Shown here: positions 37,169-54,401 of the stretch, in pieces
Numbering within the stretch: the first letter of the stretch is position 1
How the letters are laid out: every line of letters starts with the position of its first letter
Assembly: GCF_000737315.1 (NCBI RefSeq)
Contig: NZ_JMCB01000002.1
Span: 310,001 to 374,000 of the forward strand
Direction of reading: 5' to 3'
DNA: 64,000 bases
DNA from: Hyalangium minutum
GTDB lineage: Bacteria > Myxococcota > Myxococcia > Myxococcales > Myxococcaceae
The notes under the pieces: model-generated
Database searches by the model: none
The model's input: the letters and a program-made list of their open reading frames with translations, nothing else
Told to the model about the DNA's origin: nothing
Translations under genes and position numbers: made by a program

Positions 37169-38964
37169 GTTTGCCGGCTCCGCGGTGGCTCCGGGAGCTC
37201 ATCCTCCCGATGCTGCTGCTGCTCGTGTACACCGCCTGCTTCGGCCTCTACTCCCTGCACCACGAGACGGTCGAGGCGGTGGCGCACGCCCGGAGGGAAA
37301 CCCTCCGCAAGGTGGCCGAGGAGATGACGCAGCTCCAGTCCAGCTTGGACTACCTGCTGCACGCGGGGAACCTGGCGGCGGTGCGCGAGTCCGTGTCGAG
37401 CCAGGGCCACAATGTGCAGCTCCAGATGGGACTGCTCGTGGATGATCAGCAGCAGGTGCTGGCCTCCACCCGGCTGGTGCTGGTGGGCCGTCCGGCGCGC
37501 GAGGCCTGGCCGGAGCTGGAGCTGCCGGAGAACGTCCGCCGGAGGCAGGAAGCCCTGGAGCACCTCACCGGCGTGGTCGAGATCAGCGCCGACGGGCGGT
37601 ACATCATCGGCTACTACCCCGTGTCCCTGAGCTTCGGCCAGCCGAGGCGCATGGGCTATCTCTTCTTCCAGCATGACTTGACGCAGCTGGAGAGCGCCAG
37701 TCGCTACTACGCGGAGCGCTCCGTGCTGCGCTCCACGCTGCTGCTGCTGGTGATTGCTGGGGCCACGGGGCTGGGGGTTCAGCTCCTGCTGGGGCGGCGC
37801 ATTCAGCGGCTGGTGGCGGCCACGCAAGGCATGGCGGAGCAGATCGGCCGCAGCCACCAGAAGCTCCAGGAGAATGAGCATCGCTTCCAGACGCTGGTGG
37901 AGCGCACCCCGGACGCCGTCTTCGTCCACCGCGAGGGGCGCATCGTCTTCCTCAACCCCGCGGCGGGCGCGCTGGTGGGGCACGAGCGGGTGGAGGCGCT
38001 CGTGGGCCGGAACCTGGCGGAGCTCGTACAGCCCGGCGACGAGGAGGTGCTCACCGGCCCGGTGGAGGCGCAGGGGGTGCGCGAGGTGCTCTGGCTCCAC
38101 GCCTCGGGACAGCAGGTGCTGGGCGAGGCCGTCACCTTTCCCCTGGTGTTCGAGGGCCAGCCCGCCCGCGTCTCCATCGTGCGGGACGTCACCGAGCGCA
38201 AGCACCTGCGGGAGAAGCTGCAGACGGCCGACCGCATGGCCGCCATCGGCTCGCTGGCGGCGGGCGTGGCGCATGAAATCAACAACCCGCTGTCCTTCAC
38301 CCTGAGCAACGTGCGCTTCATCCGCGATGAGCTGAAGTCGCTCCTGGAGGAGGGCAGGGTGCAGGAGCAGGAGCGGCTGAAGGAGGTGCTCGACGCATCG
38401 GAGGAGGCGCTCACGGGCGCGGACAGGGTCAGCGAGATTGTCACGGACTTGCGGAGGTTCACGCGAGGCGATGATGGCAAGAAGGCGCCGGTCAACCTCC
38501 ACGCGGTGCTGGACTTGTGCGGCAGCATTGCCCGGAGCCAGCTCCGCCACCGCGCGCAGCTGGTGAAGGTGTACGGAGAGCTGCCGCCGGTGCAGGGCAG
38601 CGAGTCCCGGCTCGGGCAGCTCTTCCTCAACCTCATCATCAACGCCGCGCAGGCCATCCCCGAGGGCGGGGACGCCAAGGTCCACGAGGTGCGGCTCACC
38701 ACGTGGCGCGAGGGCGCGGACCAGGTGGTGGTGGAGGTGAGGGACACGGGCGTGGGGATTCCGCCCGAGCACCTGCGCCGGCTGTTCGATCCCTTCTTCA
38801 CCACGAAGCCCGCGGGCGTGGGCACGGGGTTGGGCCTGTCCATCTGCCATGGCATCGTGAAGGGGATGGGCGGCCGCATCACCGTGGAGAGCGAGCCGGG
38901 GCGGGGAACCGCGTTCCGGGTGTTCCTCCCCATTGGGGAGCCCGAGGCGGCGCCGGGCCCATAG
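37165..38964 (+). CDS. Membrane PAS sensor histidine kinase
   Basis: Two TM helices, PAS, HEINNPL, N box, DTGVG, FDPFFTTK, GTGLGL. Confidence 0.92.
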   Translation: MSLPAPRWLRELILPMLLLLVYTACFGLYSLHHETVEAVAHARRETLRKVAEEMTQLQSSLDYLLHAGNLAAVRESVSSQGHNVQLQMGLLVDDQQQVLASTRLVLVGRPAREAWPELELPENVRRRQEALEHLTGVVEISADGRYIIGYYPVSLSFGQPRRMGYLFFQHDLTQLESASRYYAERSVLRSTLLLLVIAGATGLGVQLLLGRRIQRLVAATQGMAEQIGRSHQKLQENEHRFQTLVERTPDAVFVHREGRIVFLNPAAGALVGHERVEALVGRNLAELVQPGDEEVLTGPVEAQGVREVLWLHASGQQVLGEAVTFPLVFEGQPARVSIVRDVTERKHLREKLQTADRMAAIGSLAAGVAHEINNPLSFTLSNVRFIRDELKSLLEEGRVQEQERLKEVLDASEEALTGADRVSEIVTDLRRFTRGDDGKKAPVNLHAVLDLCGSIARSQLRHRAQLVKVYGELPPVQGSESRLGQLFLNLIINAAQAIPEGGDAKVHEVRLTTWREGADQVVVEVRDTGVGIPPEHLRRLFDPFFTTKPAGVGTGLGLSICHGIVKGMGGRITVESEPGRGTAFRVFLPIGEPEAAPGP

Positions 38965-38997
38965 CGGAGGAGCACGCGCGTGGCTGGAGTGGACACG

Positions 38998-39723
38998 ATG
39001 GATCGCATCACCCCCACGCTGCGGCCGGACGAGCGGCCTGTCATGTATCAGCGCTGGCGGACGCTGCTGTTCCTTCACTGGGAGGTGCCGGCCGAGGAGC
39101 TGGCGCGGCTGCTGCCGCCAGGGCTGACGCTGGATACCTTCGAGGGCCGGGCCTTCGTGGGGCTGGTGCCCTTCACCATGCAGGGCGTGCGGCCCGCGCT
39201 GCTGCCGCCGTTCCCCCCGCTGTCCAACTTCCACGAGACGAACGTGCGCACGTACGTGCACCGCGAGGGGAAGGACCCGGGCGTGTGGTTCTTCAGCCTG
39301 GATGCGGCCAACCGCATCGCCGTGAAGCTGGCGCGGACGTGGTTCCGGTTGCCCTACCACTTCGACACGATGGAGCTGAAGCGCGAGGGCTCATGGATTT
39401 CCTACCGCTCCGAGCGCCATTGGCCCGAGCCCGTGCCGGGCCGCTGCGCGGTGCGGTGCTCACCGGGCTCGGAGGTGAGCACTTCAACGCCGGGCACGCT
39501 GCAGCACTTCCTGGTGGAGCGCTACTTCCTCTACACGGTGCACAGCGGAGGGCTGTGGCGAGGCCAGGTGCACCATGCGCCGTACCCGGTGCGCGGCGCG
39601 CAGGTGGAGGGGCTGGATGAATCGCTCCTGGCGGCCGCCGGGATTGCACGGCCGCCAGGAGCCCCCCTGGCTCATTTCTCGGATGGCGTGGACGTGGACG
39701 TGTTCCGCCTCAAGCGCGCCTGA
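38998..39723 (+). CDS. DUF2071 (YqjF) family protein
   Basis: MYQRW..LLFLHW, ETNVRTYV, GVWFFSLDA, FLVERY, HHAPY. Confidence 0.88.
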   Translation: MDRITPTLRPDERPVMYQRWRTLLFLHWEVPAEELARLLPPGLTLDTFEGRAFVGLVPFTMQGVRPALLPPFPPLSNFHETNVRTYVHREGKDPGVWFFSLDAANRIAVKLARTWFRLPYHFDTMELKREGSWISYRSERHWPEPVPGRCAVRCSPGSEVSTSTPGTLQHFLVERYFLYTVHSGGLWRGQVHHAPYPVRGAQVEGLDESLLAAAGIARPPGAPLAHFSDGVDVDVFRLKRA

Positions 39724-39729
39724 GCCCGC

Positions 39730-40731
39730 TCACGGAGCGCACGCGCCGCAGTCCGCCGCGCAGCTGTCGTACTGGCTGCCGTTGCCGCACTTCTCGGTGA
39801 ACTGGCACGTGCCATCACCGCAGCGGTAGATGTCCACGGGGCGGACGCGCGTGGTCAGCGGCTTGTACGTCACCCCGTTGTACGTGCAGGACACGTAGTA
39901 CGTCTTCGTCGCGTCCAGCGTGCAGTACTCCTGGCACGAGCCCACATGCGCCATGGGCGCGCAGTCCGCGCTCTGCCCCGACCAGGTGAGCCCACAGGCG
40001 CGCGAGGTGCTCTCGGACGTCTTCAGGAACGGCCGGTCGATGGCGGCGAAGATGCCCTCGCTGGTGAAGGTGTTGCCGAAGAAGCAGGCCTCGGTCTCCG
40101 AGAAGAGGGCCAGCTCCGAGCTGGTGTACGGAATCTCCGCGTTCGTCGCGCCGCGCCCCAGCACGGACACGTTGACGTTGAGGCCGAACTTGTTGGTGTG
40201 GGCCGCCAGGCACGCGGTGATGATCTGCTGCTCGGCCACCGTGGGCTGCAGGCCCGAGGCCCAGCCCGGCGTCAGCCCGAGCAGGCCGTACCACGTGTAC
40301 GTCTGCCCCGTCACCAGGCTCGTATAGGTGCGGCTCTGGCCCTGGGGCACCGCGCACATGACGATGTACTTCATCACCGTGGCGCGCAGCGTCCGGTCCA
40401 TCTCGAACCAGTCCTTGAACGTGCCCGTCATCAAGCCGTTGGTGGACAGGCCGTTGGTGGACAGGCCGTTGGTGGACAGGCCGTTGGTGGACAGGCCGTT
40501 GGTGGACAGGCCGTTGGTGGACAGGCCCATCAGTGCCATCTCCTCCGCGGTGGCCATCGCCGACTCCTGCGTGGCCAGCGACTCCTGCTGCTCGAAGCTC
40601 TCGCCCTCCTCCACACCGCATCCGGTGGCGCTTCCCAGACAGAGCACCACAGCGAAGAACGACGCCACGACAGGATTGCTGTGCTGCTGTACCGCCAAGC
40701 CACGACGAACGGAGAAGGACGTCTGATTCAT
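39730..40731 (-). CDS. Exported/lipoprotein with (GLSTN)6 pentapeptide repeat and Cys-rich domain
   Basis: Signal ending ATGC; GLSTN x6; KYIVMCAVP, TACLAAHTN, C-terminal CGDGTC. Confidence 0.8.
   Translation of the reverse strand: MNQTSFSVRRGLAVQQHSNPVVASFFAVVLCLGSATGCGVEEGESFEQQESLATQESAMATAEEMALMGLSTNGLSTNGLSTNGLSTNGLSTNGLSTNGLMTGTFKDWFEMDRTLRATVMKYIVMCAVPQGQSRTYTSLVTGQTYTWYGLLGLTPGWASGLQPTVAEQQIITACLAAHTNKFGLNVNVSVLGRGATNAEIPYTSSELALFSETEACFFGNTFTSEGIFAAIDRPFLKTSESTSRACGLTWSGQSADCAPMAHVGSCQEYCTLDATKTYYVSCTYNGVTYKPLTTRVRPVDIYRCGDGTCQFTEKCGNGSQYDSCAADCGACAP
40435..40527. repeat. 15-bp perfect tandem repeat x6 (gccgttggtggacag)
   Basis: Six identical units plus a partial one, encoding GLSTN on the minus strand. 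Confidence 0.97.
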
Positions 40732-40978
40732 GGCACCACCCCCGCGGAAGAGCGGCTGTGGAATCACAGCCGCGTGAGCCCCGCTGCTTTAGCGGCTTCG
40801 AATAATACCGCTGACACAAGCAGTAGCGCTAAGGGCACACGCACGCACTTCAATCTCAATCAAAAGAGCCGCTCGTGTTTCACTTCGGAGGGAACACCTG
40901 CGGGGTAGGGTGTCTCAATGCGAGTGATTGGGCGAGGAACTCTGAGTGGCCATGAGACAAATACACTCACAGAGTGTT

Positions 40979-42478
40979 TCAAGTTGAGACAGGCGGGCCC
41001 AGCAGCTGTACGGCCTTCGGAGTGAGGTGGAGCCCTTCCGGCACCCGCTCCACCCACGCCGCCAAGTCCGTCACGGGGCCTCCGAGCACCTCGAGCACCG
41101 TGTCCTCGCCGCGCACTTCCACCGGGCCAACGTGGACGCAGAGGTGCACGTGCGCGCCGACCTCGGAGGCGAGCAGCTCCGTCTCGCGGCGCAGGTGGCG
41201 CAGCGCCTCGTGCAGCCGCAGCGCCTGCTCGGGCGGGAGCGGGCCGGTGTCCTCTAGCAGGCGGATGCCCAGCAGCGCGGTGCCCGCCTGCAGCGCCAGC
41301 ATGAAGCCGGTGGCGCGCAGCTGCTGCTCGAGGATGTCGAGCACCTCGGCGAGCGCGGCGTGCACCGCCTCGTCATCGTGCCCCGTGTCGGCCAGCTCCA
41401 CCTCCGCGTGCACCGCCAGCGCCTGCCGCAGCTGGCCGGCGGCCACCGGCGTGCCCGGTGCGGACACCGCCTCGCGCAGCGCGGTGAGGAAGGCCTCGGT
41501 GTTCGGGAAGCGCTGCTGCGCTTCCTTCTCCAGGCAGCGCAGCACCACCGCGTCCACCGCGGGAGGCACGGGGGAAATGGCGCTCGCGCGCGGCGGCGGC
41601 GCCTCCAGGTGCAGCCGCTCCAGCTCCATCCGGTCCTTGGACTGGAATGGGTACTGCGCCGTCACCAACTGGAACAGCAGCACGCCCAGCGCGTAGATGT
41701 CCGTGGCGGGGGAGATGTCGCTGCCGCGCAGCTGCTCGGGCGCCATGGCAAAGGCGGTGCCCAGCCGCTGGCCGGCTACCGTCAGCCCCTGCTGGCCTCC
41801 CTGCGGCTGCATCACCTTGGCGATGCCGAAGTCCAACAGCTTGACTCTCGGATGCTCCCCATCCTCCACCACCATCACGTTGCTGGCCTTCAAGTCCCGG
41901 TGGACGATGCCCGCCTTGTGCGCCGCCTCCAGCGCCGCGCAGACAGGCTCCAGGTAGGCGAGCGCCCGCTCGGCCGACATCCTCCCTCGCTCGTGGATGA
42001 GCTGGCTGAGCGTGCGCCCCTCCAACAGCTCCATCACGAAGTAGGGGCTGCCATCCGGCATCATCCCGAAGTCGTACACATCCACCACATTCGGGTGGTG
42101 GATCTGGTTGACGATGCGTGCCTCGCGCACGAAGCGCTGCAACATCTCTCCCTGATCCGCCAGATGGGCGTGCAGCACCTTCACCGCCGCACGCCGCCCG
42201 AGGATGCGGTGCTCGGCCTCGTAGACGCTGCCGTGGCCGCCTGACGCGATGAGCCGCTTGAAGATGTACTCGCCCGCGAGCGCGTACTGTGGGCCCTCGG
42301 CCTTGGGTGGAGGGGAGGCGGTGTCCCAGGGGACCTGCGCCTTTCCGCCCTGGATTCGGTAAGTGTCCTCGGAGTCCCCCATGGGCGACACGCTAACTAC
42401 CTGTGTCGTTGCATGCGAGAATTTGGCCGGGGCGGAGAGCGGCTCTCCCAGGGGATCCGGAAGTCCAGGATCCGTCAT
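40979..42478 (-). CDS. Ser/Thr protein kinase with C-terminal degenerate class III cyclase-like domain
   Basis: GGHGSVY, AVK, HRDLKASN, DFG, APE; start uncertain (42478 or 42382); the ORF-track extension to 43387 overlaps the opposite-strand kinase. Confidence 0.88.
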   Translation of the reverse strand: MTDPGLPDPLGEPLSAPAKFSHATTQVVSVSPMGDSEDTYRIQGGKAQVPWDTASPPPKAEGPQYALAGEYIFKRLIASGGHGSVYEAEHRILGRRAAVKVLHAHLADQGEMLQRFVREARIVNQIHHPNVVDVYDFGMMPDGSPYFVMELLEGRTLSQLIHERGRMSAERALAYLEPVCAALEAAHKAGIVHRDLKASNVMVVEDGEHPRVKLLDFGIAKVMQPQGGQQGLTVAGQRLGTAFAMAPEQLRGSDISPATDIYALGVLLFQLVTAQYPFQSKDRMELERLHLEAPPPRASAISPVPPAVDAVVLRCLEKEAQQRFPNTEAFLTALREAVSAPGTPVAAGQLRQALAVHAEVELADTGHDDEAVHAALAEVLDILEQQLRATGFMLALQAGTALLGIRLLEDTGPLPPEQALRLHEALRHLRRETELLASEVGAHVHLCVHVGPVEVRGEDTVLEVLGGPVTDLAAWVERVPEGLHLTPKAVQLLGPPVST

Positions 42479-42611
42479 CCGAAAGCCCCTCTGGCGGAGG
42501 CCCTGTCTGTTGGTGAATGCTTCCAGGTGCAACAGACGCGCTAGGTTGGACGCCCGGCGGCGAGGCTGCTGGGATTCCCCGGGGAGAGTCTCCCCGGGGG
42601 GGTAACTGCCC

Positions 42612-44888
42612 ATGACGATGCTGGATGATGTGACCACCCATGCGGGGATGCCGCTCATGGCCTCCTCGTCCTCTCCTGGAGCGTGCCTGATTCTGATCAG
42701 CACGGCGCTGCCAGGCTTGATTGGCAAGGCCTTCCCGCTGGCGCCGGGCGAGCACGTGGTGGGCCGCGGCTCCGAGGCCAGCATCCGCATTGATGACCAT
42801 GGGGTGTCCCGGCGGCACGCGCGCGTGGTCCGTACGTCCGAGGGCGCGTGCTTCGTCACGGACCTGAAGTCCACCAACGGCACGTACCTCAACGGGGTGT
42901 CCGTCTCCTCGGCGGAGCTGCGCGAGGGGGACCGGCTGCAGATTGGCACCGGCACCGTGTTCCGCTTCTCCATCCGTGGGCAGCTCGAGCCCCGCGAGGA
43001 GCAGCTTCGCCAGGCGCTGTCCGCCGCGCGTGTGGGCATCTGGGACTGGAACGCCTCCTCCGGCGTGGTGACGTGGTCCGAGCACGTGGACCGCATGCTG
43101 GGCCTGCACGTGGGCAAGCTCTCCGGCCGCCCCATGGAGCTGCGCGAGGTGGTGCACCCGGAGGACCTGGAGCGCGTGAAGGCGGCGCTGGCCTCGGCGC
43201 TGGAGCAGAAGACGCACGTGGAGCTGGAGTACCGCATCGAGCCCGCGGGCAGCGGCTTCCGGTGGATCTCCTGCAAAGGAGACGTGCTGACGGACCTGGC
43301 TGGCGCTCCCGCGCGCATCACGGGCACGGTGATGGATATTACGGCGCGCAAGCAGGCCGAGCAGGAGCTGCGCCGCCACGCGCTCATCTTCGAGAGCTTC
43401 TATGACGGGGTGGTCATCACCGACTTGTCCGGCCGGATTGTGGACTTGAACCCGAGCGCGGAGCGGATGTTCGGCCGCGTCAAGTCGGAGACGCTGGGAC
43501 TGACGCTCTTCTCGGTGCTGCACCCGGGGGAGACGGACGCGCTCACGGCGAAGATTTTCTCCACGCTGGAGCAGATGGGCCGCTGGACGGGCGAGGTGGA
43601 GTTCCAGCGCCGCGACGGCACCAGCTGCACCTGCGAGTCCGTGGCGGTACCGCTGCGGGACTCGGAGGGGCTCGCCATCGCCTGCATCCTGGTCCACCGG
43701 GACATTACGGAGCGCAAGCACCTGCAGGCGCGCCTGGTGATGGCGGACCGGCTCGCGTCCGTGGGCACGCTGGGCGCGGGCGTGGCGCATGAAATCAACA
43801 ACCCGCTGGCCTACATGCTCGTCAACCTGCACCTCATCCGCTCGGGGCTGGAGCGGCTGGAGGCGCTGTCGCCGCCAGGCACCATCGAGCCGCTGCAACA
43901 GCTGGCCCAGGAGACGACCGAGGGCGCCGAGCGGATTGCCGCCATCGTGAAGGACCTGAAGACGTTCGCGCGCGGCGAGGCGGATGCACGGCTGGGCGCG
44001 GTGGACGTGCGGCGCGCGGTGGAGCTGGCGTGCAAGATGGCGGACAACATGCTGCGCCACCGCGCGCGGCTGATGCTGGACTTCGAGTCGGCGCCGCCCG
44101 TGGAGGCCAACGAGTCCCGGCTGTGCCAGGTGTTCCTCAACCTGCTGTTGAACGCGGCGCAGGCCATCCCCGAGGGCGAGCCGCCGGAGCGCCATGAGAT
44201 TGCCGTGCGCATCCGCACGAAGGAGCCCGGGCAGGTGGTGGTGGAGGTGCGGGACACGGGCGCGGGCATGACGTCCGAGGTGCTCTCGCGCGTGTTTGAT
44301 CCGTTCTTCACGACGAAGCCGGTGGGCGAGGGCACGGGCCTGGGGCTCTCCATCTGCCACGGCATCATCGAGTCGATGGGCGGCACCATCTCCGTGGAGA
44401 GCACGCCGGGCAAGGGCAGCACCTTCCGCGTCGTGCTGCGCGCCATGGAGGTGGAGGAGGACATCCCCACGCGCGTCGACTTGCGGACCCTCGGCGCGGT
44501 GTCGGCCGCGCCGCGCGCACGGGTGCTCGTGGTGGATGACGAGCCGAACGTGACATCCGCGCTGCGGCGCGCCCTGGGCTCCGACCACGACGTGTCCACC
44601 GCCAACAGCGCCCGCGATGCGCTGCAGCTGCTGACGCGGGACCGTGGGTTCGACATCATCCTGTGTGACTTGATGATGCCGGGGATGACGGGCATGGACC
44701 TGTACGCGGAGCTGGACAAGGAAGCGCCCGAGGTGGCCACACGGGTGGTCTTCATGACGGGCGGTGCGTTCACTCCCCGCGCCGTCACCTTCCTTCAGGG
44801 CGTGCCGAACCCCAAGATTGGCAAGCCCTTGAACCTGGAGGAGCTGAGGGTGCTCGTCAGCCGGCGCGCCGCCGGGGCCCAGCGATGA
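42612..44888 (+). CDS. Cytoplasmic hybrid histidine kinase FHA-PAS-PAS-HisKA-HATPase-REC
   Basis: FHA GR..SRRHA..STNGT; GIWDW PAS; HEINNPL; VLVVDD, DLMMPGMTG. Confidence 0.93.
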   Translation: MTMLDDVTTHAGMPLMASSSSPGACLILISTALPGLIGKAFPLAPGEHVVGRGSEASIRIDDHGVSRRHARVVRTSEGACFVTDLKSTNGTYLNGVSVSSAELREGDRLQIGTGTVFRFSIRGQLEPREEQLRQALSAARVGIWDWNASSGVVTWSEHVDRMLGLHVGKLSGRPMELREVVHPEDLERVKAALASALEQKTHVELEYRIEPAGSGFRWISCKGDVLTDLAGAPARITGTVMDITARKQAEQELRRHALIFESFYDGVVITDLSGRIVDLNPSAERMFGRVKSETLGLTLFSVLHPGETDALTAKIFSTLEQMGRWTGEVEFQRRDGTSCTCESVAVPLRDSEGLAIACILVHRDITERKHLQARLVMADRLASVGTLGAGVAHEINNPLAYMLVNLHLIRSGLERLEALSPPGTIEPLQQLAQETTEGAERIAAIVKDLKTFARGEADARLGAVDVRRAVELACKMADNMLRHRARLMLDFESAPPVEANESRLCQVFLNLLLNAAQAIPEGEPPERHEIAVRIRTKEPGQVVVEVRDTGAGMTSEVLSRVFDPFFTTKPVGEGTGLGLSICHGIIESMGGTISVESTPGKGSTFRVVLRAMEVEEDIPTRVDLRTLGAVSAAPRARVLVVDDEPNVTSALRRALGSDHDVSTANSARDALQLLTRDRGFDIILCDLMMPGMTGMDLYAELDKEAPEVATRVVFMTGGAFTPRAVTFLQGVPNPKIGKPLNLEELRVLVSRRAAGAQR

Positions 44889-46678
44889 CGGTCCCCTCGA
44901 GGTCCCTGGAGCCGGTGGCTCTTGGAGGCGCTTCCGAGCAGACGCTCGTGCCCCCTCCGGCACAGGAGACACTGGGCACAGGCCGGGAGTTCACTCCGCG
45001 TGCGCTGGCCACCGGGTGCCTCATCGGAGCCGTGCTGACTGTCTCCAACCTCTACATGGGGTTGAAGACGGGGCTCTGGGAGAGCGGCTCCATCATGTCG
45101 GCGGTGCTGGGCTTCAGCGGCCTGGCGGCGTTGGGGCGGCGGTGGGGTGGGGCGCCGGGGCCGCTGGAGACGAACCTCTCGCAGTCGACCTCGAGCGCCA
45201 CGGGTGCGGTGCCCGCCGCGGCAGGGCTGTTGGGCACGGTGCCGGCGCTGGCGCTGATGGGAGTGACCGTGCCCGCGTGGAGCCTGGTGGCCTGGGGCGC
45301 GTCGCTGGGGCTGCTCGGGGTGATGGCCTCGCACCTGCTGCGCAGGCGGCTGCTGGTGGACGAGGCGCTGCCATTCCCCACGGGCGCAGCCACCGCCGAA
45401 GTGATTACCGCCATGCACAGGGAAGGGGCCATGCGGCAGCCGGGGCGGGCCAAGGCGCTGATGGGCGCGGGGCTGTGCTCCATGGCGCTGACCTGGGCGA
45501 GGGATGCGCTCAAATGGGTGCCCGACGTGACGGCGTTTCCGGGGCGGCTGGCGGGGTTGCCCGCGGCCACCTTCACCTGGGGCTTCGGCTGGATGCCGCT
45601 GGCGCTGGGGGTTGGGATTCTGGCGGGGCTGCCCATGGGGCTGAGCATGCTGCTGGGCGCCGTGCTGGCCTTTGGTGTGCTGGCGCCCCCGCTCGTGAGC
45701 TCGGGGGTGGTCGCGGAGAGTGGCGGCTATGAGGCGCTCTCCATTTGGCTCGTCTGGCCTGGCGTCGGGTTGATGGTGGGCGGGGCGCTCGTCTCGCTCG
45801 CGTCGCAGGCGCGCTCGCTCTTCAGGGTGGTGAAGGATCTGCGCGCGCTGGGGAGCGGGGATGTGCGCTCCCTCCGCTGGCTCCTGGTGGCGGCGCTGGG
45901 GGCGTGTGGCGTGGTGCTCGCCCTGGGCGTGGGAGTGTTTGGGCTGTCCCTGCTCCAGGCGCTGGTGATGCTGGCGCTCGTGGTGCCACTGTGCGCGGTG
46001 TGCGCGCGCGGGGCGGGGCAGGTGGATGTGGCTCCGGTGGGTTCCATGGGCCAGGCCGCGCAGATTGCCTCGGGCACCTTCTTCCCAGGGCCGAGCGCGG
46101 TCAATGTCGCCGCGGGCGGCGTGGTGGCGGGAGCGGTGGCGCACACGGGCGTGGGCCTCTGGTCTCTCAAGGCTGGACACCTGCTGGGTGCCGCGCCCCA
46201 GCGCCAGCTCCTCGCACAGTTGCTGGGTGTGCTCGTGGGGTCCGTGGTGGCTGTGCCTGCGTATCTGCTGCTGGTGCAGACCCATGGGCTCGCGAGCAAG
46301 GCACTGGCCGCACCCTCGGCGCAGCCGATCCGCGTGGTGGCGGAGCTCTTTACGCGGGGGGGCTCGGGGCTGCCGCCGTATGCGCTCCTGGCAGCGGGGA
46401 TTGGCTTCGGACTGGGCGTCGTGCTGGCGCTGGCCGCGCGCGGGAGGCTGGAGCGCTTCCTGCCGTCACCGGTGGCCATGGGCATTGGCTTCATTCTGCC
46501 CGCGTTCGTCGCGGTGACGATCGCCCTGGGCGGGCTGCTGGCCGCGGTGGCGCGCCGCGTCCGGCCTCAGTGGACCGAGCAGTACCTCCCTGCGGTGGGA
46601 GCGGGCACCATCACCGGTGAGTCCCTGATGGGGCTGGCCATCGCGGCGCTCACGTGGTTCGGGGTTCTGGGGCACTAG
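44885..46678 (+). CDS. OPT-family oligopeptide transporter
   Basis: NLYMGLKTG, ETN..Q, L.FPTG.ATA, SLKAGHL, many TM helices; ATGA overlap with the kinase. Confidence 0.9.
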   Translation: MTVPSRSLEPVALGGASEQTLVPPPAQETLGTGREFTPRALATGCLIGAVLTVSNLYMGLKTGLWESGSIMSAVLGFSGLAALGRRWGGAPGPLETNLSQSTSSATGAVPAAAGLLGTVPALALMGVTVPAWSLVAWGASLGLLGVMASHLLRRRLLVDEALPFPTGAATAEVITAMHREGAMRQPGRAKALMGAGLCSMALTWARDALKWVPDVTAFPGRLAGLPAATFTWGFGWMPLALGVGILAGLPMGLSMLLGAVLAFGVLAPPLVSSGVVAESGGYEALSIWLVWPGVGLMVGGALVSLASQARSLFRVVKDLRALGSGDVRSLRWLLVAALGACGVVLALGVGVFGLSLLQALVMLALVVPLCAVCARGAGQVDVAPVGSMGQAAQIASGTFFPGPSAVNVAAGGVVAGAVAHTGVGLWSLKAGHLLGAAPQRQLLAQLLGVLVGSVVAVPAYLLLVQTHGLASKALAAPSAQPIRVVAELFTRGGSGLPPYALLAAGIGFGLGVVLALAARGRLERFLPSPVAMGIGFILPAFVAVTIALGGLLAAVARRVRPQWTEQYLPAVGAGTITGESLMGLAIAALTWFGVLGH

Positions 46679-46705
46679 CATCGATGGCCCCCGAAACTCC
46701 GTGAG

Positions 46706-49700
46706 CTACGCCGGGCTCGAGGCCCGCTCCAGCGCTCGTCGCAGCCGCCCTTCCATGAGGTTGGGGATGGTGGCGGCCCGCTCCAGCGCCTCCTTCAGGA
46801 CGCGCACTGCCTCCTCGCGCTCTCCTCGCCGCAGCGCCGCCAGCCCCATCATCTCCAGCACCTCCAGCGGCTCCTGCTCCATGGACACCTCCGCCGAGCG
46901 CAGCCGGAGCTGCTGCCACGCCTCCTGGCTGGCGTCCTGCGTGGTGAGCTCCACCATGGAGAAGAGCACCTCCTCGGAGGCGCTGAGCGCAGAGGCCTGC
47001 CGCTGCCGGGACAGCACCCCGCGCACCTGCGCCAGCCGCTCCATCGCCTGTGCGTACTTGCCCTCCCAGGCCAGCACCCGCGCGTCCAGCAGCAGCCCCC
47101 AGGGCCGAGATGCCACCTCGGGGTGCTGGCGCTCCAGGTCGATGGCCCGTGCAATGTGTGGCGCCGCCGCCCCCGCGTCCCCCGCCTGGTAGTACAGCTC
47201 TCCCAGGTTGTGCTCGGCGAAGTACTCCCAGCCCACCATGCCCAGCTCGCGGCCCAGGTGCATGAACCGCAGCTGATCCTTCACCGCGTTGGCCAGGTCC
47301 TTGCGCGACACCCAGAGGTTGCGCCGGTTGTTGATGGCGCTGCCCAAGTGGAACCGGTCACCGCGCTTCGTGCACGAGGCGATGACGTCCTCCAGCACCT
47401 CCGCTGTCTCCGTGATGCGGCCCAGGTTGGGGAGGATGACGGCCAGCAGCAACTGCGCCACCACCCGCGTCTCGTAGCCCGCGTCTCCCAGCAGGTTCGC
47501 GCTGTCCGCGGCCGCCTCCAGCGGAGGACAGGCCTCCGCCCAGCGGCCCTTGCGGAACCACGTCATGCCCACGCCCAGCAGCAGCCGTGCCCGGACATAG
47601 GTGGAGGCCACCTTGCCCACCCGTGCATGCGCCGCATCCACGCAGGCCGCCGAGCGCTCGTAGTCGTTCATCCAGTCCCGCGCCATCGCCTCGTCCAGCA
47701 GCACCTCCACCTCGGCGCGCACGTCGGCCACCCGCCGGGCCATCTCTCGCGCCTTCGTGAAGTCCGCCAGCGAGTCCTCGTACCGGCCAATGCGGTAGCG
47801 CATCATCCCCCGCCCCCGGTAGAGCGTCAGCCCGCGCAGCTCGTCCGCCGAATCCAACAGCGCCAGCGCGCGTGTGTAGAGTGTCTCCGCGTCCAGGTAG
47901 GCGTGACGGCCGCGGGCGGACTCGGCCAGATCCAAGTAGAGCGCGAGCGCCTCCTCCCGCATGCCCGCCACCGCCGCGTGGAAGGCCAGCCGGGGGATGA
48001 GCTGCCGCTCGTGGGCGGCGCTGCGGCTCTCGAAGAAGCGGAAGGCCGCGCGGTGGATGTGGATGCGCTCGGCCTCGGGCAGCGTGTGGGCCACCGCCTC
48101 GCGTACCAGCTCGTTGCGGAAGCTGATCTCCTCGTGGCGGTGCTCCACCAGCAGCCCCTGGTCCAACAGCCGGCGCGTGGCGTGGCCCGGGTCCAACGGG
48201 AAGTCCGCCGCGAGCCCCTCGCGCTCCAGCTCCCGCACCACGCCCTCGGCCGAGGTGGCGGTGAAGTCCGAGCCCAGCAGTGCGCACAGCCGAGCGTGCG
48301 CCGCCAGCGCCGGAGGGAGGGCCCCCAGCTCACGGTCCGCCAGCCACTCCACCAGCCGCAGCTCCGGGAGGGTGTTCAGCTCGTCGGTGACGAGGTACCA
48401 ACTGCCCCCATCGCCGCGCTGGCGCACCAGGCCCTGCCGCTTGAGGGCTCGCACGAGCTCCACCAAGAAGAGGGGCACGCGGCGGGCGCGCTCGACGATG
48501 CGCTCCACCGCTTGAGCGGGCACGTTGTCCACCGGGCGCAGCAGCGTGCGGCACAGTGCCTGCGCATGCTCGGGCGCCAGCGGCTCCAGGGTGAGGCGGA
48601 GTCGATGGGCGGCGCGCGTGCCCCAGGCGGGACGGCTGCGCTCGAACTCCGGGCGCGCCAGCACGCCGATCCACAGAGGCACCCGGGTCTCCGCCAGACA
48701 CGCGTACTCCAGCGCATCCAGCGAAATCTCATCCGCGAAGTGCGCGTCATCGAGCAGCAGGCACAGCGGGCGCTCGCGGGCGATGGCCGCCAGCAGCTCT
48801 CCGGTGGCGCGCATGGCCAGCGAGCGCAACGCACCCGGTGCTGCGGCCCGGCTCTGCAGCTCGGGGCTGTCCGGGGCGGACCACCCCAGTGTGGCGGACA
48901 CGCCGGGCCACAGCTCCGCGGCCAGCTCGGGCCCCAGCCGCGAGAAGAAGGCATTGCGGCCCTCCTCCACCGAGCCGGTGTCATCCTTCTCGAAGGCGTG
49001 GAGCGCCAGGCGCAGCAGCGTGCGCAGGGTGCCCGAGGGGTCTCCCTGCACGGGCTCGCGCGCGCGCAGCGTGTAGACGCGGGCCCGGGGCAGGGACTCG
49101 CGCACCCGGTGGGCCAGCTCCGCGCTGAAGTGGCTCTTGCCGTGGCCCCGCTCGCCCAGCACCGTGGCCAGCGTGGGAGCGCGCTCCTCCAACGCCCGGC
49201 GCACGCTCGCCCAGAAGGACTTCAGCTCCTCGTCCCGGCCGATCAGCACCTCGCTGCCGAGCTTGAGCACGGTGGCCTCCGTGCGCGGCGCCACTTCGGC
49301 GGGCACGGGGCGCAGCAGGCCCTCGCGGTCGGGGACAGACGCGAAGCTCACGTCGGGCACGGCGTCCGCCGCCGCGGAGGTGAGCATCAGGGGGATGGTG
49401 TCCGTGGCGGCGGGGTAGCGCTCCTTGCGCGTGAAGATGCTGCCCAGGTAGCGCGGCGGCGAGCCCGGGCGCTGCTGCACGGTGACGGTGGCCACGTCCA
49501 CGAGCGCCGTCGTCACCAGCCCGCGCTCCTCCAGCTCCTGCGCCGCGCGCATGGCCCGCTGCACCGGATTCTCCCCGGCGTTGAGATCGAACACGCCGGC
49601 GAACCGGGGGCCGTCGCGCCAGGCCACCTGCCCGCCGAGCCCGCTCAGCACCTTCTGGATGGAGACGGGGTTGCCGGTGGAGGAGCAGAGCAGCACCGCC

Positions 49701-50734
49701 ACCGAGCGGCGGGCCTGGGCGGGGCGAGCGGGCTCCTCGGGGGAAGCGGGACGCGCGGGAGCTTCCCGGACGGGCGGGGCAGAGTAGACGGGCTGGGAGA
49801 GCGCCTCGCGCAGCGCCCCGCGCACAGCGGCCCCACTGTCGAAGCGCCGGAAGCGCTCCTTGGAGAGGCACTGGAGCACCACGGCCTCCACGGCCGGTGA
49901 GACGGGGGCCAGCTCCGAGGGGCGCTGGGGCCTCAGCGAGAGGTGCGATTGAAGCACCTGCGTGTGGAGGCCGAAGAAGGGGGGGCGCCCGGTGAGCATC
50001 TCGTACAGGAGCACCCCGAATGCGTAGACGTCCGTGCGCGCATCCAGCAGGGCGGAGCCCGCGCATTGCTCGGGGGCCATGTACTCCGCGGTCCCCGCGT
50101 AGGCGTGCGCACTGGCCGTGGAGGCGTCTCCGGGGAAGGGGGGCAGGGCCGGGGAGCGCGCCAGCCCGAAGTCGATGAGCCGCACGCGCGCGGGGTCCGC
50201 GTCCAGGAAGAGGTTCTCCGGCTTGAGGTCGCAGTGGATGAAGCCCCGCGTGTGGAGCGAGTCCAGCGCCTCCGCCATGGCGAGCGCGTGCGAGGAGAAC
50301 TCCTGCGGCGGCAGGGGGCCGGAGGGCTCGGCCAGGCGCTGGGCCAGGGTGGGCTGCGCCACATACTCCATCACCATGCAGCGGCCACCGGCCTCGAGCG
50401 GGCTCAGCTCATACAGCGCGGGCGTCAGCGGAGGGCCGATGAGCCGCAGCGCCTCGGCCTCGCGGGTGAGCAGGGCGGCGGCCAGGGAATGGCCAGTCGG
50501 AGGGACCTTGAGGGCCACGGGGGTGTTGTCCGAGAGCCGGTGTCCGCCCAGCACTGTGGCGAAGCCGCCGCGCGCGATGAGGCGATCGACGCGGTAGCCC
50601 ACCAGAGAGAGCTCCGGGGCCGCGAGGCTCTCGGGCAGAGGCGCTGGGGCGTTCAGGCCAGGGCCCCCCTGTGGACACACGGGGTGAGTTCCCTCCCAGC
50701 GCCTGCCGCATGTCTGACAGCGAGGCACGCTCAA
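46706..50734 (-). CDS. Ser/Thr kinase - degenerate cyclase - AAA/STAND ATPase - TPR protein
   Basis: HCDLKPEN, DFG, YMAPE; Walker A GERGHGKS, Walker B LLLDD; helical repeats. Confidence 0.9.
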   Translation of the reverse strand: MSVPRCQTCGRRWEGTHPVCPQGGPGLNAPAPLPESLAAPELSLVGYRVDRLIARGGFATVLGGHRLSDNTPVALKVPPTGHSLAAALLTREAEALRLIGPPLTPALYELSPLEAGGRCMVMEYVAQPTLAQRLAEPSGPLPPQEFSSHALAMAEALDSLHTRGFIHCDLKPENLFLDADPARVRLIDFGLARSPALPPFPGDASTASAHAYAGTAEYMAPEQCAGSALLDARTDVYAFGVLLYEMLTGRPPFFGLHTQVLQSHLSLRPQRPSELAPVSPAVEAVVLQCLSKERFRRFDSGAAVRGALREALSQPVYSAPPVREAPARPASPEEPARPAQARRSVAVLLCSSTGNPVSIQKVLSGLGGQVAWRDGPRFAGVFDLNAGENPVQRAMRAAQELEERGLVTTALVDVATVTVQQRPGSPPRYLGSIFTRKERYPAATDTIPLMLTSAAADAVPDVSFASVPDREGLLRPVPAEVAPRTEATVLKLGSEVLIGRDEELKSFWASVRRALEERAPTLATVLGERGHGKSHFSAELAHRVRESLPRARVYTLRAREPVQGDPSGTLRTLLRLALHAFEKDDTGSVEEGRNAFFSRLGPELAAELWPGVSATLGWSAPDSPELQSRAAAPGALRSLAMRATGELLAAIARERPLCLLLDDAHFADEISLDALEYACLAETRVPLWIGVLARPEFERSRPAWGTRAAHRLRLTLEPLAPEHAQALCRTLLRPVDNVPAQAVERIVERARRVPLFLVELVRALKRQGLVRQRGDGGSWYLVTDELNTLPELRLVEWLADRELGALPPALAAHARLCALLGSDFTATSAEGVVRELEREGLAADFPLDPGHATRRLLDQGLLVEHRHEEISFRNELVREAVAHTLPEAERIHIHRAAFRFFESRSAAHERQLIPRLAFHAAVAGMREEALALYLDLAESARGRHAYLDAETLYTRALALLDSADELRGLTLYRGRGMMRYRIGRYEDSLADFTKAREMARRVADVRAEVEVLLDEAMARDWMNDYERSAACVDAAHARVGKVASTYVRARLLLGVGMTWFRKGRWAEACPPLEAAADSANLLGDAGYETRVVAQLLLAVILPNLGRITETAEVLEDVIASCTKRGDRFHLGSAINNRRNLWVSRKDLANAVKDQLRFMHLGRELGMVGWEYFAEHNLGELYYQAGDAGAAAPHIARAIDLERQHPEVASRPWGLLLDARVLAWEGKYAQAMERLAQVRGVLSRQRQASALSASEEVLFSMVELTTQDASQEAWQQLRLRSAEVSMEQEPLEVLEMMGLAALRRGEREEAVRVLKEALERAATIPNLMEGRLRRALERASSPA

Positions 50735-50879: not shown

Positions 50880-52454
50880 TCACTCGAGCCCGCCCGAGTC
50901 GTAGCTGGAGGGTACGTCCACGTGGAAGACGAGCTCCACCGTGCGCTTCTCCGCCGGAGCCAGCGGGAGCTTCCAGGTGGCGATGCCGTCCGCTGCGTCC
51001 AGCGCGTAGCCCGCCGTCGTCTTCTTCGCGTCCAGCTCCACCTTCACGTCCTCCAGCTCGGACACGGGGATGTGCTCGGACACCTCGAGCTGCTCGGGCG
51101 TCTTGCGGTAGTTGGCCACCTCGAAGCGGTAGGCGTAGCGGAAGCGCCGCTTGCCGCCGAAGAGGCCCGTGTCCCGGGCCACCTCCTCTACCACCTGCCG
51201 CTCCACGCGCAGGCCCTCCTCGATGCCGAACGTCAGCTCGAAGGGGGCGCCTTGCGCCACGCGCTCCAGCGGCTGGCGGCCGAGGAAGCCCGTCTGCCGG
51301 AACACGTCCACCGGGCCCGCCAGCAGCGGGAAGGGCGCCGTGTTGGTGAGCCGCGCCACGCGGAACACCACCGGGTACAGCTTGGGAATGGTGCGCCAGG
51401 CGAAGGAGGCCTGGAGCGGGGTGCGCGCCACCCTCAGCCGCACCTCCGAGCCGTCTCCCGGCACATTCGCCCGCTCCGGTACGGTGAGCTGCACGGAGAG
51501 CCCCTGGGCCTTGGCATGCAGGGACTCTCCGCCGGAGGGAGGGGTGCTGGCTCCCGACTGCGCGTGCTCCTGGCGCTCCTCGCGGCTCACGAGCACCTTG
51601 CGCTCCACCTTGCGCTCCCGGGAGGAGACGAACAGGGGCCGCAGCTCCGGAGGCGTGGCGTTCTCATCCGGCACGGCGGTGGAGAGCACCAGCTGCGCCT
51701 CCTTCCAGTCCTCGCCGGAGGCCTGCTTCACCGTGGCGTAGGTGGACAGCTCCACCCGCTGGCCCTGCTCGTCGGCGCGGGCCTCGTAGGCCGGCTGCCA
51801 GGAGGCGCCGCCCACCAGGTAGGTGAGCTCCACGCGGGCCTGGGTGCCCGAGGGGCAGTCCAGCCGCACCTCCACGCTCCGGTCGATGCGCGCCGAGGCC
51901 GCCAGCGTCCGCTGCTCCTGGGTGGAGAGCTCGGCCAGGGCGCGCGAGGTGGTGCGCAGCTTGGAGGCTTGGGCCTCCCGCTCGGCGCTGGCGCGCAGCC
52001 GGGAGCCGAGCGCCGTGTCCAGCGCGGTGCCCCACGCGCGGGTGTCCGGCTTGGCCTCGGTGAACTCGCGGCGGATGCGCCCGAGCGCCACGTTCATGAG
52101 GCCCGAGCCCAGCGAGTCCAGGGCCAGGGCGCGCGCGCGGGCATGCTCCAGGGCGGCCAGCTCGCGCTCCAGCTCCACGCGCTGCTTCTCCTGCTTCTCT
52201 CGCTCGGCGCCGTAGCGCGTCTGCCGCGTGTGCTCGGAGGCGAGCAGGCCCTCCACGGTGCCCCGGTCGGCGCGCGCCCGGAAGCTGGAGGGATCCGCGG
52301 CAGGGGGCAGCTCCTCGAAGCGCGCCAGGGTATCGCGGCCCGTGCACGTCACCGTCTGCGCGCGCGTCACCTGGGCGCGGTCGGGGTAGACGACGACGGA
52401 GCTCACCGAGGGAGTGGCGGCGAGCACCCACAACGTCAGGGACAGGGTGTGCAT
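50880..52454 (-). CDS. DUF4139/DUF4140 protein (MuiA-like)
   Basis: SVVVYPDRAQVTR, ASW.PAYE.R, Q.SGEDW...L.LSTA. Confidence 0.88.
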   Translation of the reverse strand: MHTLSLTLWVLAATPSVSSVVVYPDRAQVTRAQTVTCTGRDTLARFEELPPAADPSSFRARADRGTVEGLLASEHTRQTRYGAEREKQEKQRVELERELAALEHARARALALDSLGSGLMNVALGRIRREFTEAKPDTRAWGTALDTALGSRLRASAEREAQASKLRTTSRALAELSTQEQRTLAASARIDRSVEVRLDCPSGTQARVELTYLVGGASWQPAYEARADEQGQRVELSTYATVKQASGEDWKEAQLVLSTAVPDENATPPELRPLFVSSRERKVERKVLVSREERQEHAQSGASTPPSGGESLHAKAQGLSVQLTVPERANVPGDGSEVRLRVARTPLQASFAWRTIPKLYPVVFRVARLTNTAPFPLLAGPVDVFRQTGFLGRQPLERVAQGAPFELTFGIEEGLRVERQVVEEVARDTGLFGGKRRFRYAYRFEVANYRKTPEQLEVSEHIPVSELEDVKVELDAKKTTAGYALDAADGIATWKLPLAPAEKRTVELVFHVDVPSSYDSGGLE

Positions 52455-52466
52455 GGTCGCTCCTCC

Positions 52467-54401
52467 TTATTGAGACTGGGACAGGCGCCAGCCCTTCGGG
52501 CGGCGCAGGGTGTATTCGAAGGACACCACCGTCTTGCCCGAGGCGGGCACGGTGAGCTCCCACTCCAGCGCGCCCTTCACCTTGTCCTGCTTGGCGTAGG
52601 GCTCGGTGCGCACGAGCTTGATCTCCACGTCCTTGTCCTTCGTGAGCGGCCACTGGTCGTGGATGCGCACCGGAAGGGGGAAGGCGTAGGGGTTGGCCAC
52701 TTCGAGGGTGACGCGGTACAGGGTCTCCTCGTCCTTGCTGATGAAGCCCTTCTCTGACTCGACGAGCGTCACGTTGCGCACGGGCCGCACCGCGCGGTCC
52801 ACGCCCAGCGGCAGGGTGAAGCGCTCGCCGGGCGCCACAAGCTTCAGCGAGGCCGTGCCCGCGGGGTCCGAGCCGACGAAGAGGCTGGCCTCGCCCCCGG
52901 GCAGCACCTGCTTCGAGGGGCTCTGCAGCTCCGCCACGAGGAAGGCATCCCGGGCGAGCGCGGGGAACAGCTTGCGCTCGGTCTTCACGGGCCAGGACTC
53001 GGTGAAGAGCGGGACGAGCCGTCCGCCTCCACCGCTGGGGATGGTCTCCCGGCGCGCGGAGGGAAAGGCCAGGTCATAGCCTCCGGCGAGCGAGGCCGGC
53101 AGGCGCGGATCCACGGCGGGCCGACGCCAGGCCGCGGGAGGCGCGAGCCCCACGCCCAGGGTCGTCGTGGGAACGGAGGGCCGGGAGCTGCTGGTCAGGC
53201 CTCCGAACGAGTGGCTCCCGGTGACAACCACCTCTTCGAGATACTCCTCGGGAGGCATGGACCCGGCCGCCAAGGAAGGAGGTGGGGGTGGCGCAGGCGG
53301 GGGCTTGGCCTCGTAGGTGCTGCCTGGAGCCTGATTCCCAGCGAGCACTGACGCGTCCGCGTTGATGCCCGTGGCAGGGGAGTCCACGTCGAGCCCGTTC
53401 ACGACGTACTCCGTCTGCCCAGCCGGCGTGGCCTGAACCCGGGCGAGCAGCCGCTGGCGGAGCTGATCACTCTCCTTCGCCTCGGCGGGGAGGGGCGGAG
53501 GAAGCGGAGGCGGCGGGCGGGACGGCCGGACGAGCGGAGCGGGTGTGGGGATGAAGCGCTCTTGCTGGCCAATCTTCCAGGTGGCGAGCTTGGGCAGGGC
53601 GGTGGCGGTGGCGGGGATGGCGGTGCTGAGCGTGAGCACCGCGTCCTGCCAGTCCTCGCCGGACTCCTGGCTCACGAATCCGAAGAAGGACACCTGCACC
53701 CGGTTCGTCTCAGGGGCGAGCTGCAGCTCGTAGCGGGGGAACCAGCGCGCGTTGCCGGTGACATAGGTGAGGGTGAGCTTCACCGGGCCACTGCCCGAGA
53801 GCGTGGGCGCCACCTCGAGCCCAGGGCTGCGAGGCGCACCGCCCAGCCGGGAGGCCTCCTGGAGCTGGCGCTCGCGCGTTCTCTCGAGGTCTCGAATCCG
53901 CGCGTCCAGCTCGCGCAGCCGCGCCTGGAGCTTGTCGAGGGTATCGATCCAAAAGGTGCTGGCCGCGTTCCAGCCGGAGGGGTCCAAGCGGGGGGGCGGG
54001 GCCTTGTCTCGGTCTCCCTCGGGGAGGGGCTGAGGGTTCAGGCCCCGGAGAGCGGAGAGCTGGGTGTTGCACGCCTCCCGCTCGGAGCGGGTGCGGGTGA
54101 GCTGGTCATCCAGCCGGTCCAGCGCGTCGAGCACCTTGCGGGCCTCGGTGGCGAGCAGCATCTCGGGGCTGACGGGCTTCAGGTCCACGCGGGAGACTTC
54201 GGCGCCCTCGGCTTCCACGCGGACGGAGGAGGCATCTACCGCGCCGTGGAGGAGGGGCAGCTCCACGCGCTGGGAGCCCGAGAGGGTGAGCTGGGCGGTG
54301 CGGACCACCCGCGCCTGGTCGCTGTAGACGGTGACAGAGGTAATGGGCGCATCGACGGCGGTGGCCAGCGCCCCGAAGCCCAAGAGTCCAAGCAGGAGCA
54401 T
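52467..54401 (-). CDS. DUF4139/DUF4140 protein with central insert
   Basis: SVTVYSDQARVVR, W.PRYE, QESGEDW..LSTA; signal peptide. Confidence 0.88.
   Translation of the reverse strand: MLLLGLLGFGALATAVDAPITSVTVYSDQARVVRTAQLTLSGSQRVELPLLHGAVDASSVRVEAEGAEVSRVDLKPVSPEMLLATEARKVLDALDRLDDQLTRTRSEREACNTQLSALRGLNPQPLPEGDRDKAPPPRLDPSGWNAASTFWIDTLDKLQARLRELDARIRDLERTRERQLQEASRLGGAPRSPGLEVAPTLSGSGPVKLTLTYVTGNARWFPRYELQLAPETNRVQVSFFGFVSQESGEDWQDAVLTLSTAIPATATALPKLATWKIGQQERFIPTPAPLVRPSRPPPPLPPPLPAEAKESDQLRQRLLARVQATPAGQTEYVVNGLDVDSPATGINADASVLAGNQAPGSTYEAKPPPAPPPPPSLAAGSMPPEEYLEEVVVTGSHSFGGLTSSSRPSVPTTTLGVGLAPPAAWRRPAVDPRLPASLAGGYDLAFPSARRETIPSGGGGRLVPLFTESWPVKTERKLFPALARDAFLVAELQSPSKQVLPGGEASLFVGSDPAGTASLKLVAPGERFTLPLGVDRAVRPVRNVTLVESEKGFISKDEETLYRVTLEVANPYAFPLPVRIHDQWPLTKDKDVEIKLVRTEPYAKQDKVKGALEWELTVPASGKTVVSFEYTLRRPKGWRLSQSQ

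Follow-up and report, generated by a model that had tools for sequence, protein, structure and literature searches.

Gene content and identity of the locus

We analysed a 64,000-nucleotide stretch of the Hyalangium minutum genome (contig NZ_JMCB01000002.1), referred to below as the window, in which positions 39730-50734 hold a hybrid histidine kinase, a transporter of the OPT family, two Ser/Thr kinases and a predicted lipoprotein that carries a pentapeptide repeat. Because the G+C content of the window is about 70%, third-position GC was used to pick out the real genes, and the calls were then completed by translation. This analysis resolved the region into five contiguous genes, as a preliminary description of the sequence had it, with one correction at the start of the first kinase. 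A (GLSTN)6 protein had also been named in that description, and both the translation and a perfect 15-bp repeat of 6.2 copies bear it out. The features are as follows, in coordinates of the window:

39730..40731, minus strand: repeat lipoprotein gene, 333 amino acids; the ATG at 40731 agrees with the starts of orthologues; Pfam GLTT (PF01744)
40435..40527, minus strand: tandem repeat encoding the pentapeptide array; 15-bp unit, 6.2 copies, 100% matches, score 186 (Tandem Repeats Finder)
40979..42382, minus strand: pktA5 orthologue, Ser/Thr kinase, 467 amino acids; Pfam Pkinase, 160 bits
42383..42611, no strand: divergent intergenic region between pktA5 and espA, a spacer of about 230 bp, read from the sequence
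42612..44888, plus strand: espA, hybrid histidine kinase, 758 amino acids; FHA, PAS_3, PAS, HisKA, HATPase_c and Response_reg
44885..46678, plus strand: espB, OPT transporter, 597 amino acids; PF03169 over its full length; the start overlaps the espA stop
46706..50734, minus strand: pktB8 orthologue, 1342 amino acids; Ser/Thr kinase, cyclase-like middle region, AAA_16 (STAND) and TPR

The longest open reading frame of the first kinase extends up to 43387 and was rejected as spurious, since it runs into espA. A start at the methionine at 42382 gives 467 amino acids, within the range of the orthologues (457-469 amino acids); an alternative in-frame methionine upstream, at 42478, is possible, but the lengths of the orthologues disagree with it. 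For the repeat protein, the public gene call begins at an internal GTG and yields 294 amino acids ('MEEGESF...'), which strips off the signal peptide and the lipobox, so that the protein would be annotated as non-secreted. The promoters of both pktA5 and espA presumably lie within the divergent spacer.

Four of the five genes correspond to the Esp module of Myxococcus xanthus. EspA matches the NCBIfam equivalog NF052573 from end to end (1-758/1-755) at 1569.6 bits, above the cut-off of 1400, and contains the FHA domain, two PAS domains, HisKA/HATPase and receiver that define the protein. EspB covers positions 1-622 of the 623 in the OPT profile PF03169 (281.5 bits) and scores 244 bits against TIGR00728 (cut-off 128). 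The M. xanthus EspB is itself a seed sequence of the OPT family (PMC3061005), and no characterised substrate of a bacterial OPT member was found in the literature. PktB8 matches AAA_16 (45.3 bits, cut-off 32.6) and TPR_12 (31.7 bits, cut-off 30.1) at residues 497-683 and 929-1320, the layout of a STAND NTPase with a TPR sensor, in which an AAA_16-type NTPase precedes TPR repeats, and it partially matches the architecture of the TOMM kinase/cyclase fusions in NCBIfam.

The arrangement of these genes is conserved as well. A genome scan with the OPT protein, together with a look-up of homologues, recovered the identical order of kinase (minus), FHA kinase (plus), OPT (plus) and STAND kinase (minus) in Myxococcus, Corallococcus, Stigmatella aurantiaca, Archangium gephyra, Hyalangium gracile and Melittangium boletus, with pktA5 divergent from espA and pktB8 convergent on espB, as in the Esp locus. 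PktA5 is 59-83% identical to the syntenic kinases of Myxococcus, Stigmatella, Hyalangium, Archangium and Melittangium, and PktB8 is 59-76% identical to syntenic proteins of 1295-1342 amino acids. In the closest named relative, H. gracile, the five syntenic proteins are 61-83% identical to those of the window; the range is given elsewhere as 66-83%, with EspB lowest and PktA5 highest. The espB gene lies directly downstream of espA in one operon, the TGA of espA and the ATG of espB sharing the ATGA at 44885-44888. By coordinates, the same 4-bp overlap occurs in Myxococcus, Archangium, Hyalangium and Melittangium, and the two genes overlap in Stigmatella as well.

In M. xanthus, pktA5, espB and pktB8 are MXAN_0930, MXAN_0932 and MXAN_0933 (bioRxiv 10.64898/2026.08.28.747804). 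Their products act together and may interact with EspA; EspA phosphorylates both its own receiver and the receiver of EspC, with an increased turnover of MrpC as the output (PMC4320627); EspAC have been described as setting off the regulated proteolysis of MrpC (bioRxiv 10.64898/2026.07.28.741289). It is virtually certain that the region is the orthologue of this developmental-timing module, laid out as pktA5 <- | -> espA-espB | <- pktB8. The circuit of kinases, FHA protein, OPT and STAND protein, which the preliminary description put forward as a candidate signalling module, is thus not new, because these four genes are the known EspA/EspB/PktA5/PktB8 module. The link it drew through the FHA domain, between Ser/Thr kinases and a His-Asp relay, is part of the Esp model as published (PMC4320627, citing Stein 2006).

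Two further observations concern relatives of these proteins. The AAA_16 and TPR regions of PktB8 are 81% and 80% identical to those of Hyalangium, and the kinase domain 66%, a pattern that points to strong constraint on the sensor half. Myxococcus qinghaiensis and M. eversor each have a paralogous cluster that lacks a repeat lipoprotein within 10 kb and combines an OPT protein (33-34% identity) with two kinases, one of which is a kinase-STAND protein (34%).

The repeat lipoprotein and its linkage to the Esp genes

The fifth gene encodes a protein whose plan is shared by 120 close homologues and by the distant ones sampled: a signal peptide with a lipobox, an acidic linker, the pentapeptide array and a Cys-rich domain. 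In the window the lipobox reads ...VVLCLGSATG-C38-GVEE, as read directly off the sequence. Its cysteine is shared by at least 90% of 59 homologues and can be recognised in distant relatives too, as would be expected of a lipoprotein. The linker is acidic and variable (20-35 residues), the array reads MGLSTN(GLSTN)5GLMT, and the C-terminal domain, of about 235 amino acids, has about 14 cysteines that are invariant or nearly so. An AlphaFold model built on a 59-sequence alignment shows residues 90-300 as a confident alpha/beta domain, with a predicted local distance difference test score (pLDDT) of about 90.

We collected 696 homologues of the repeat protein, and the family comprises 1033 clusters at 50% identity (E <= 1e-3), with many paralogues per genome; the named members that were looked up come from Myxococcota or 'Deltaproteobacteria'. 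Pfam and NCBIfam contain nothing that matches the lipoprotein beyond GLTT. A profile search of the C-terminal domain against PDB sequences returned 0 matches, and Foldseek against PDB and BFVD returned none that was significant (best E-value 0.35). Some relatives are fused to Ricin-B, FG-GAP, RCC1 or CBM96 domains. Since such fusions are typical of extracytoplasmic proteins, they support an extracytoplasmic location, and on these sequence features we infer that the gene encodes a lipid-anchored, disulfide-rich extracytoplasmic protein.

To examine its genomic context, the window proteins were compared by tblastn with all fetched loci. In every locus that fully covers the OPT gene and both kinases, the C-terminal domain of the repeat lipoprotein adjoins the kinase and OPT genes. 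In Myxococcaceae and Archangiaceae the lipoprotein gene lies beyond pktA5, as in the window, and it is adjacent to pktB8 in metagenome-assembled genomes (MAGs) of Anaeromyxobacteraceae, Polyangiaceae and Myxococcales. Two Anaeromyxobacteraceae MAGs have the order PktA5 (minus), OPT (plus), PktB8 (minus), lipoprotein (minus), EspA (plus). Five Myxococcales MAG loci share the first four of these in the same order, with EspA absent or a GAF histidine kinase in its stead, and one Polyangiaceae MAG has OPT, PktA5, PktB8 and lipoprotein all on the plus strand. The MAG SMAG_U9411 contains three separate contigs (L007, L008 and L009), each with OPT, PktB8 and the lipoprotein, which represent either a triplication of the whole module or a strain mixture. 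A scan of metagenomes with a profile of the lipoprotein domain yielded 39 loci of at least 5 kb, and in 18 of them Esp-module genes stand beside the lipoprotein, in several arrangements. Among these are co-directional PktA5-lipoprotein-PktB8 operons with gaps of 48-58 bp and neither OPT nor EspA within 4-6 kb. A lack of joint conservation, which the preliminary description named as a refutation, is not what was seen: the five genes are conserved together, the lipoprotein standing beside kinase or OPT genes in all fully covered loci and in these 18 of the 39 metagenome loci. The repeat gene is a conserved fifth member of the Esp neighbourhood and appears to be unreported as such; by gene numbering, it is expected to correspond to MXAN_0929 in M. 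xanthus.

Local expansions and divergent forms of the lipoprotein were also seen. In Stigmatella aurantiaca DW4/3-1 three tandem lipoprotein paralogues lie beyond pktA5 (L064 2529-5855), all with NGLSV units whose synonymous codons differ. In the lipoproteins of L007-L009, degenerate NGL units are preceded by long Thr-rich repeats of 13 residues.

A neighbour-joining tree of the domain has deep branches that track taxonomy and are all Esp-linked, and the four unlinked paralogues examined, which adjoin either a PAS kinase with MbnP/MauG or PhyH, nest within Myxococcaceae and Archangiaceae sequences. Since the deep branches are Esp-linked and the unlinked paralogues nested, the Esp-like cluster is the ancestral context of the lipoprotein. 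We also considered whether the lipoprotein might have no functional tie to Esp, its adjacency being a historical accident passed on by descent in a large, mobile, multi-copy family. The many paralogues per genome in a family of 1033 clusters, the absence of Esp genes from 21 of the 39 metagenome loci and the chance adjacency to be expected in kinase-dense myxobacterial genomes would all fit this explanation. Even so, it is quite improbable, since the adjacency persists from Polyangiaceae to Myxococcaceae through at least four gene orders and orientations, the whole module seems to have been duplicated together (L007-L009), the spacing is tight and operon-like, and the deep branches of the tree are all Esp-linked. 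An adjacency that outlasts repeated rearrangement is strong evidence of functional coupling, tightest to the two kinases, and on this comparative basis the lipoprotein is likely to be functionally coupled to them.

Selection on the pentapeptide array

The array is regular in most of the close homologues. In the top 120 homologues the unit is GLSTN in 56 and GLSVN in 44, with nine rarer types; in 102 of the 120 arrays all units are alike, and the commonest copy numbers are 5-7. Near-identical alleles can differ in copy number, such as P0010 with 6 units and P0035 with 2. Across 14 arrays for which DNA was available, the codon variants found within an array comprise 34 synonymous and 2 non-synonymous changes, including switches between TCN and AGY serine codons, a ratio with a binomial p of 2e-17 against the neutral expectation. 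This result shows that the amino-acid sequence of the unit is under purifying selection, and hence that the array is not a neutral low-complexity linker. The two non-synonymous variants each replace Leu by Met in the fourth unit of an Anaeromyxobacteraceae array, and a third related array also has Met in its fourth unit. Among these three arrays, positions 4-5 (TT, SV and SA) differ between arrays in every unit.

What is kept over longer distances is more limited. The wider family includes units such as NGINT (25 copies), NGIVV, NGLSR, ANKLA, NALNP, NRLSL and NSLIP, among others, and across the members sampled from the 1033 clusters the only constants, with a period of 5, are Asn at position 1 and a hydrophobic residue at position 3. 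The retention of these two positions alone looks like the mark of a structural repeat. One Esp-linked clade has heterogeneous, degenerate units (NGMPP-NLLGL-NGLQP-NSL), sometimes following unrelated Thr-rich repeats. Long arrays in relatives score 20-33 bits against Pfam Pentapeptide_4, below its cut-off of 38, and a single-sequence AlphaFold model of one of them (P0274) places a short strand every five residues, at a mean pLDDT of 36; both observations are no more than hints. Taken together, the sequence patterns favour, with moderate confidence, a structural array over a released signal.

Some residues of the array lend themselves to other roles. Asn-Gly is the dipeptide most prone to deamidation, and the array could in principle be a site of modification, either a timer based on slow Asn-Gly deamidation or a substrate for Ser/Thr glycosylation or phosphorylation that alters the activity of the lipoprotein. 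N-G is invariant in the close subfamily, where it occurs in 6-9 copies within a segment predicted to be disordered, and Esp is described in the literature as a timing device. We regard this explanation as very improbable, because distant members have A, S, R, K or P after the Asn, many arrays (NGIVV, NGLNL) lack Ser/Thr at positions 4-5 and no modifying enzyme is conserved in the cluster. A further idea was that the array is an FHA ligand: pT-x-x-L is the classic FHA motif, and GLSTNGLSTN has Leu at Thr+3. It was rejected as a general mechanism, since most Esp-linked arrays (SV, SL, NL, SA, IVV) have no Thr.

The preliminary description proposed instead that the repeat peptide is exported, re-imported by the OPT transporter and read by the STAND-TPR kinase, in a quorum- or kin-sensing circuit. 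In its full form, the array would be a multi-copy pro-peptide from which N-x-hydrophobic-x-x pentapeptides are cut, and these would be taken up by EspB and sensed by the TPR/STAND region of PktB8. Several of our findings fit such a model. The lipoprotein is linked to OPT and kinases across the phylum; its units are identical in amino acids despite synonymous divergence (34:2), as in multi-copy precursors; and they differ among close relatives (ST, SV, TT, SL, NL), resembling pherotype variation. Fungal OPT members carry tetra- and pentapeptides, so that a unit of five residues would suit the range of the characterised transporters. If the model were true, the input of the Esp timer would be a self-made peptide, serving as a quorum or kin signal in a Gram-negative bacterium, with 'pherotypes' that differ by lineage (ST, SV, SL, NL and others).

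However, the model is not supported. PktA5-lipoprotein-PktB8 operons occur without an OPT gene, and unlinked paralogues, at loci with no OPT or kinase, bear equally regular NGLST or NGLSV arrays. Within PktB8, conservation is highest in the TPR and AAA_16 regions, and these track phylogeny rather than unit type. The TPR region of the window (unit ST) is 80% identical to that of Hyalangium (SV) and 69% identical to that of Myxococcus (ST), and the expected co-variation of unit type with EspB or with the PktB8 TPR was absent in a coarse, domain-level comparison of 21 loci with few independent same-unit pairs. The degenerate Esp-linked clade described above has heterogeneous units, only positions 1 and 3 are constrained across the family, and conservation within the protein is greatest in the globular domain. 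Nor does the cluster contain a flanking processing motif, a protease or an exporter; no protease is conserved in the neighbourhoods of the Myxococcus, Stigmatella, Archangium, Hyalangium and Melittangium loci. Overall we consider a re-imported pro-peptide sensed by PktB8 unlikely, and give equally little credence to the version in which pentapeptides freed from a surface lipoprotein and imported by EspB are read by a complex of PktA5, PktB8 and EspA.

Proposed role of the lipoprotein and comparison with known systems

The explanation that we find most plausible, and hold with moderate confidence, is that the locus is an Esp module in which the lipoprotein serves as the extracytoplasmic partner and the array as a structural stalk. 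The lipoprotein would be the periplasmic or surface partner of a sensor that is otherwise cytoplasmic and membrane-embedded (two kinases plus OPT), and would work together with these components. Its globular domain may bind, produce or present the Esp input, and the N-x-hydrophobic-x-x array would be a selected stalk or spacer leading from the lipid anchor to that domain, and no source of diffusible pentapeptides. According to the published model, PktA5, PktB8 and EspB modulate EspA, probably via the FHA domain, and EspA with EspC sets off the regulated proteolysis of the transcription factor MrpC, thereby delaying aggregation and sporulation.

Several observations sit less comfortably with this explanation. 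The N-terminus and the array of the window protein are of low confidence in the AlphaFold model (pLDDT 31-57); the long-array model is likewise of low confidence, and its Foldseek matches, mostly pentapeptide-repeat beta-helices, are not significant. In a Polyangiaceae MAG (L005 17478-18894), an Esp-linked homologue has a uniform hexapeptide array, NGLSTM x6, and an extra C-terminal Ricin-B lectin domain; neither this hexapeptide nor the concerted changes at positions 4-5 would be obvious under a simple stalk model. Esp genes are lacking at 21 of the 39 metagenome loci, and since about half of the sampled family is not beside Esp genes, the family as a whole has a broader role. Finally, no link between the lipoprotein and Esp was found in the literature searched, where MXAN_0929 and the GLTT repeat are not mentioned.

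The comparative data suggest that the ancestral unit consisted of the two kinases and the lipoprotein, usually with OPT, and that EspA was recruited later. They likewise suggest that the place of the lipoprotein in this neighbourhood predates both the association with EspA and the formation of fruiting bodies. Because the ancestral unit occurs in non-fruiting lineages, its original role was probably not developmental. Esp controls the tempo of Myxococcus development by way of MrpC turnover. A lipoprotein that has stood beside the two kinases, and usually the OPT gene, since before the split of Myxococcaceae, Anaeromyxobacteraceae and Polyangiaceae is a clear candidate for the extracytoplasmic component that the system has so far been missing. 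The conserved fifth gene, its family and a unit of kinases and lipoprotein older than EspA all appear to be unreported. The family itself is large (>1000 clusters at 50% identity) and uncharacterised, has no solved structural relative and carries an array under unusually strict selection.

The surroundings of the five genes show conservation of their own. Two genes, one for an NMT1-like periplasmic binding protein (36212-37168) and one for a PAS histidine kinase (37165-38964), have 4 bp in common; the PAS-kinase core of the latter is 44% identical to that of EspA. In Hyalangium a relative of this kinase (73% identity) lies upstream of the lipoprotein gene, and in Corallococcus and Myxococcus that position is held by a shorter kinase core that resembles EspA (52-55% identity). 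A DUF2071 gene (38980-39723) abuts the lipoprotein gene tail to tail. Stigmatella, Archangium, Hyalangium and Melittangium have kept this neighbour (70-82% identity), which is not conserved in Myxococcus or Corallococcus. Two DUF4140/DUF4139 genes stand in tandem just past pktB8, at 50880-54401. They belong to the MuiA 'mucoidy inhibitor' family (TIGR02231, 423 bits), share about 30% identity and are not conserved in position in the other genera. Scans for tRNA, tmRNA and Rfam families at gathering score found none across the window (1-64000).

Comparison with characterised systems places the array and the lipoprotein among several partial likenesses. The RRNPP or Rap-Phr systems of Firmicutes share with the proposed peptide circuit the concept of an exported peptide, its re-import by an oligopeptide transporter and a cytoplasmic TPR reader. 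They differ in that the candidate here is not a small pro-peptide but a 333-amino-acid lipoprotein with a folded domain of 235 amino acids, the importer would be an OPT rather than an Opp ABC transporter, and the TPR protein is a STAND kinase; co-diversification of receptor and peptide is not seen here at the coarse domain level of the 21 loci. Multi-copy precursors, such as yeast alpha-factor and the KEX2-processed repeats of fungi, likewise have tandem identical units, purifying selection and varying copy number. The tandem identical core units are present here, whereas processing sites and a dedicated protease are not: the units abut with no spacer or dibasic sites, and the array is tied to a lipid anchor and to a globular domain that is conserved.

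The classical pentapeptide-repeat proteins, A(D/N)LXX proteins such as MfpA, Qnr and Rfr that form a quadrilateral beta-helix, have the same period of 5 and the same conserved Asn and hydrophobic residue. Their register is N-L, in contrast to N-x-L here, the window array has only 6-7 units, and the window protein matches no Pentapeptide profile (PF00805 clan), only GLTT PF01744. The closest system is Esp of M. xanthus. The present locus comes from another genus, and the literature searched does not describe its lipoprotein as a component of Esp, but the four genes, their order and orientation and their domain architectures are the same, and the Myxococcus locus, too, carries a repeat lipoprotein beyond pktA5.

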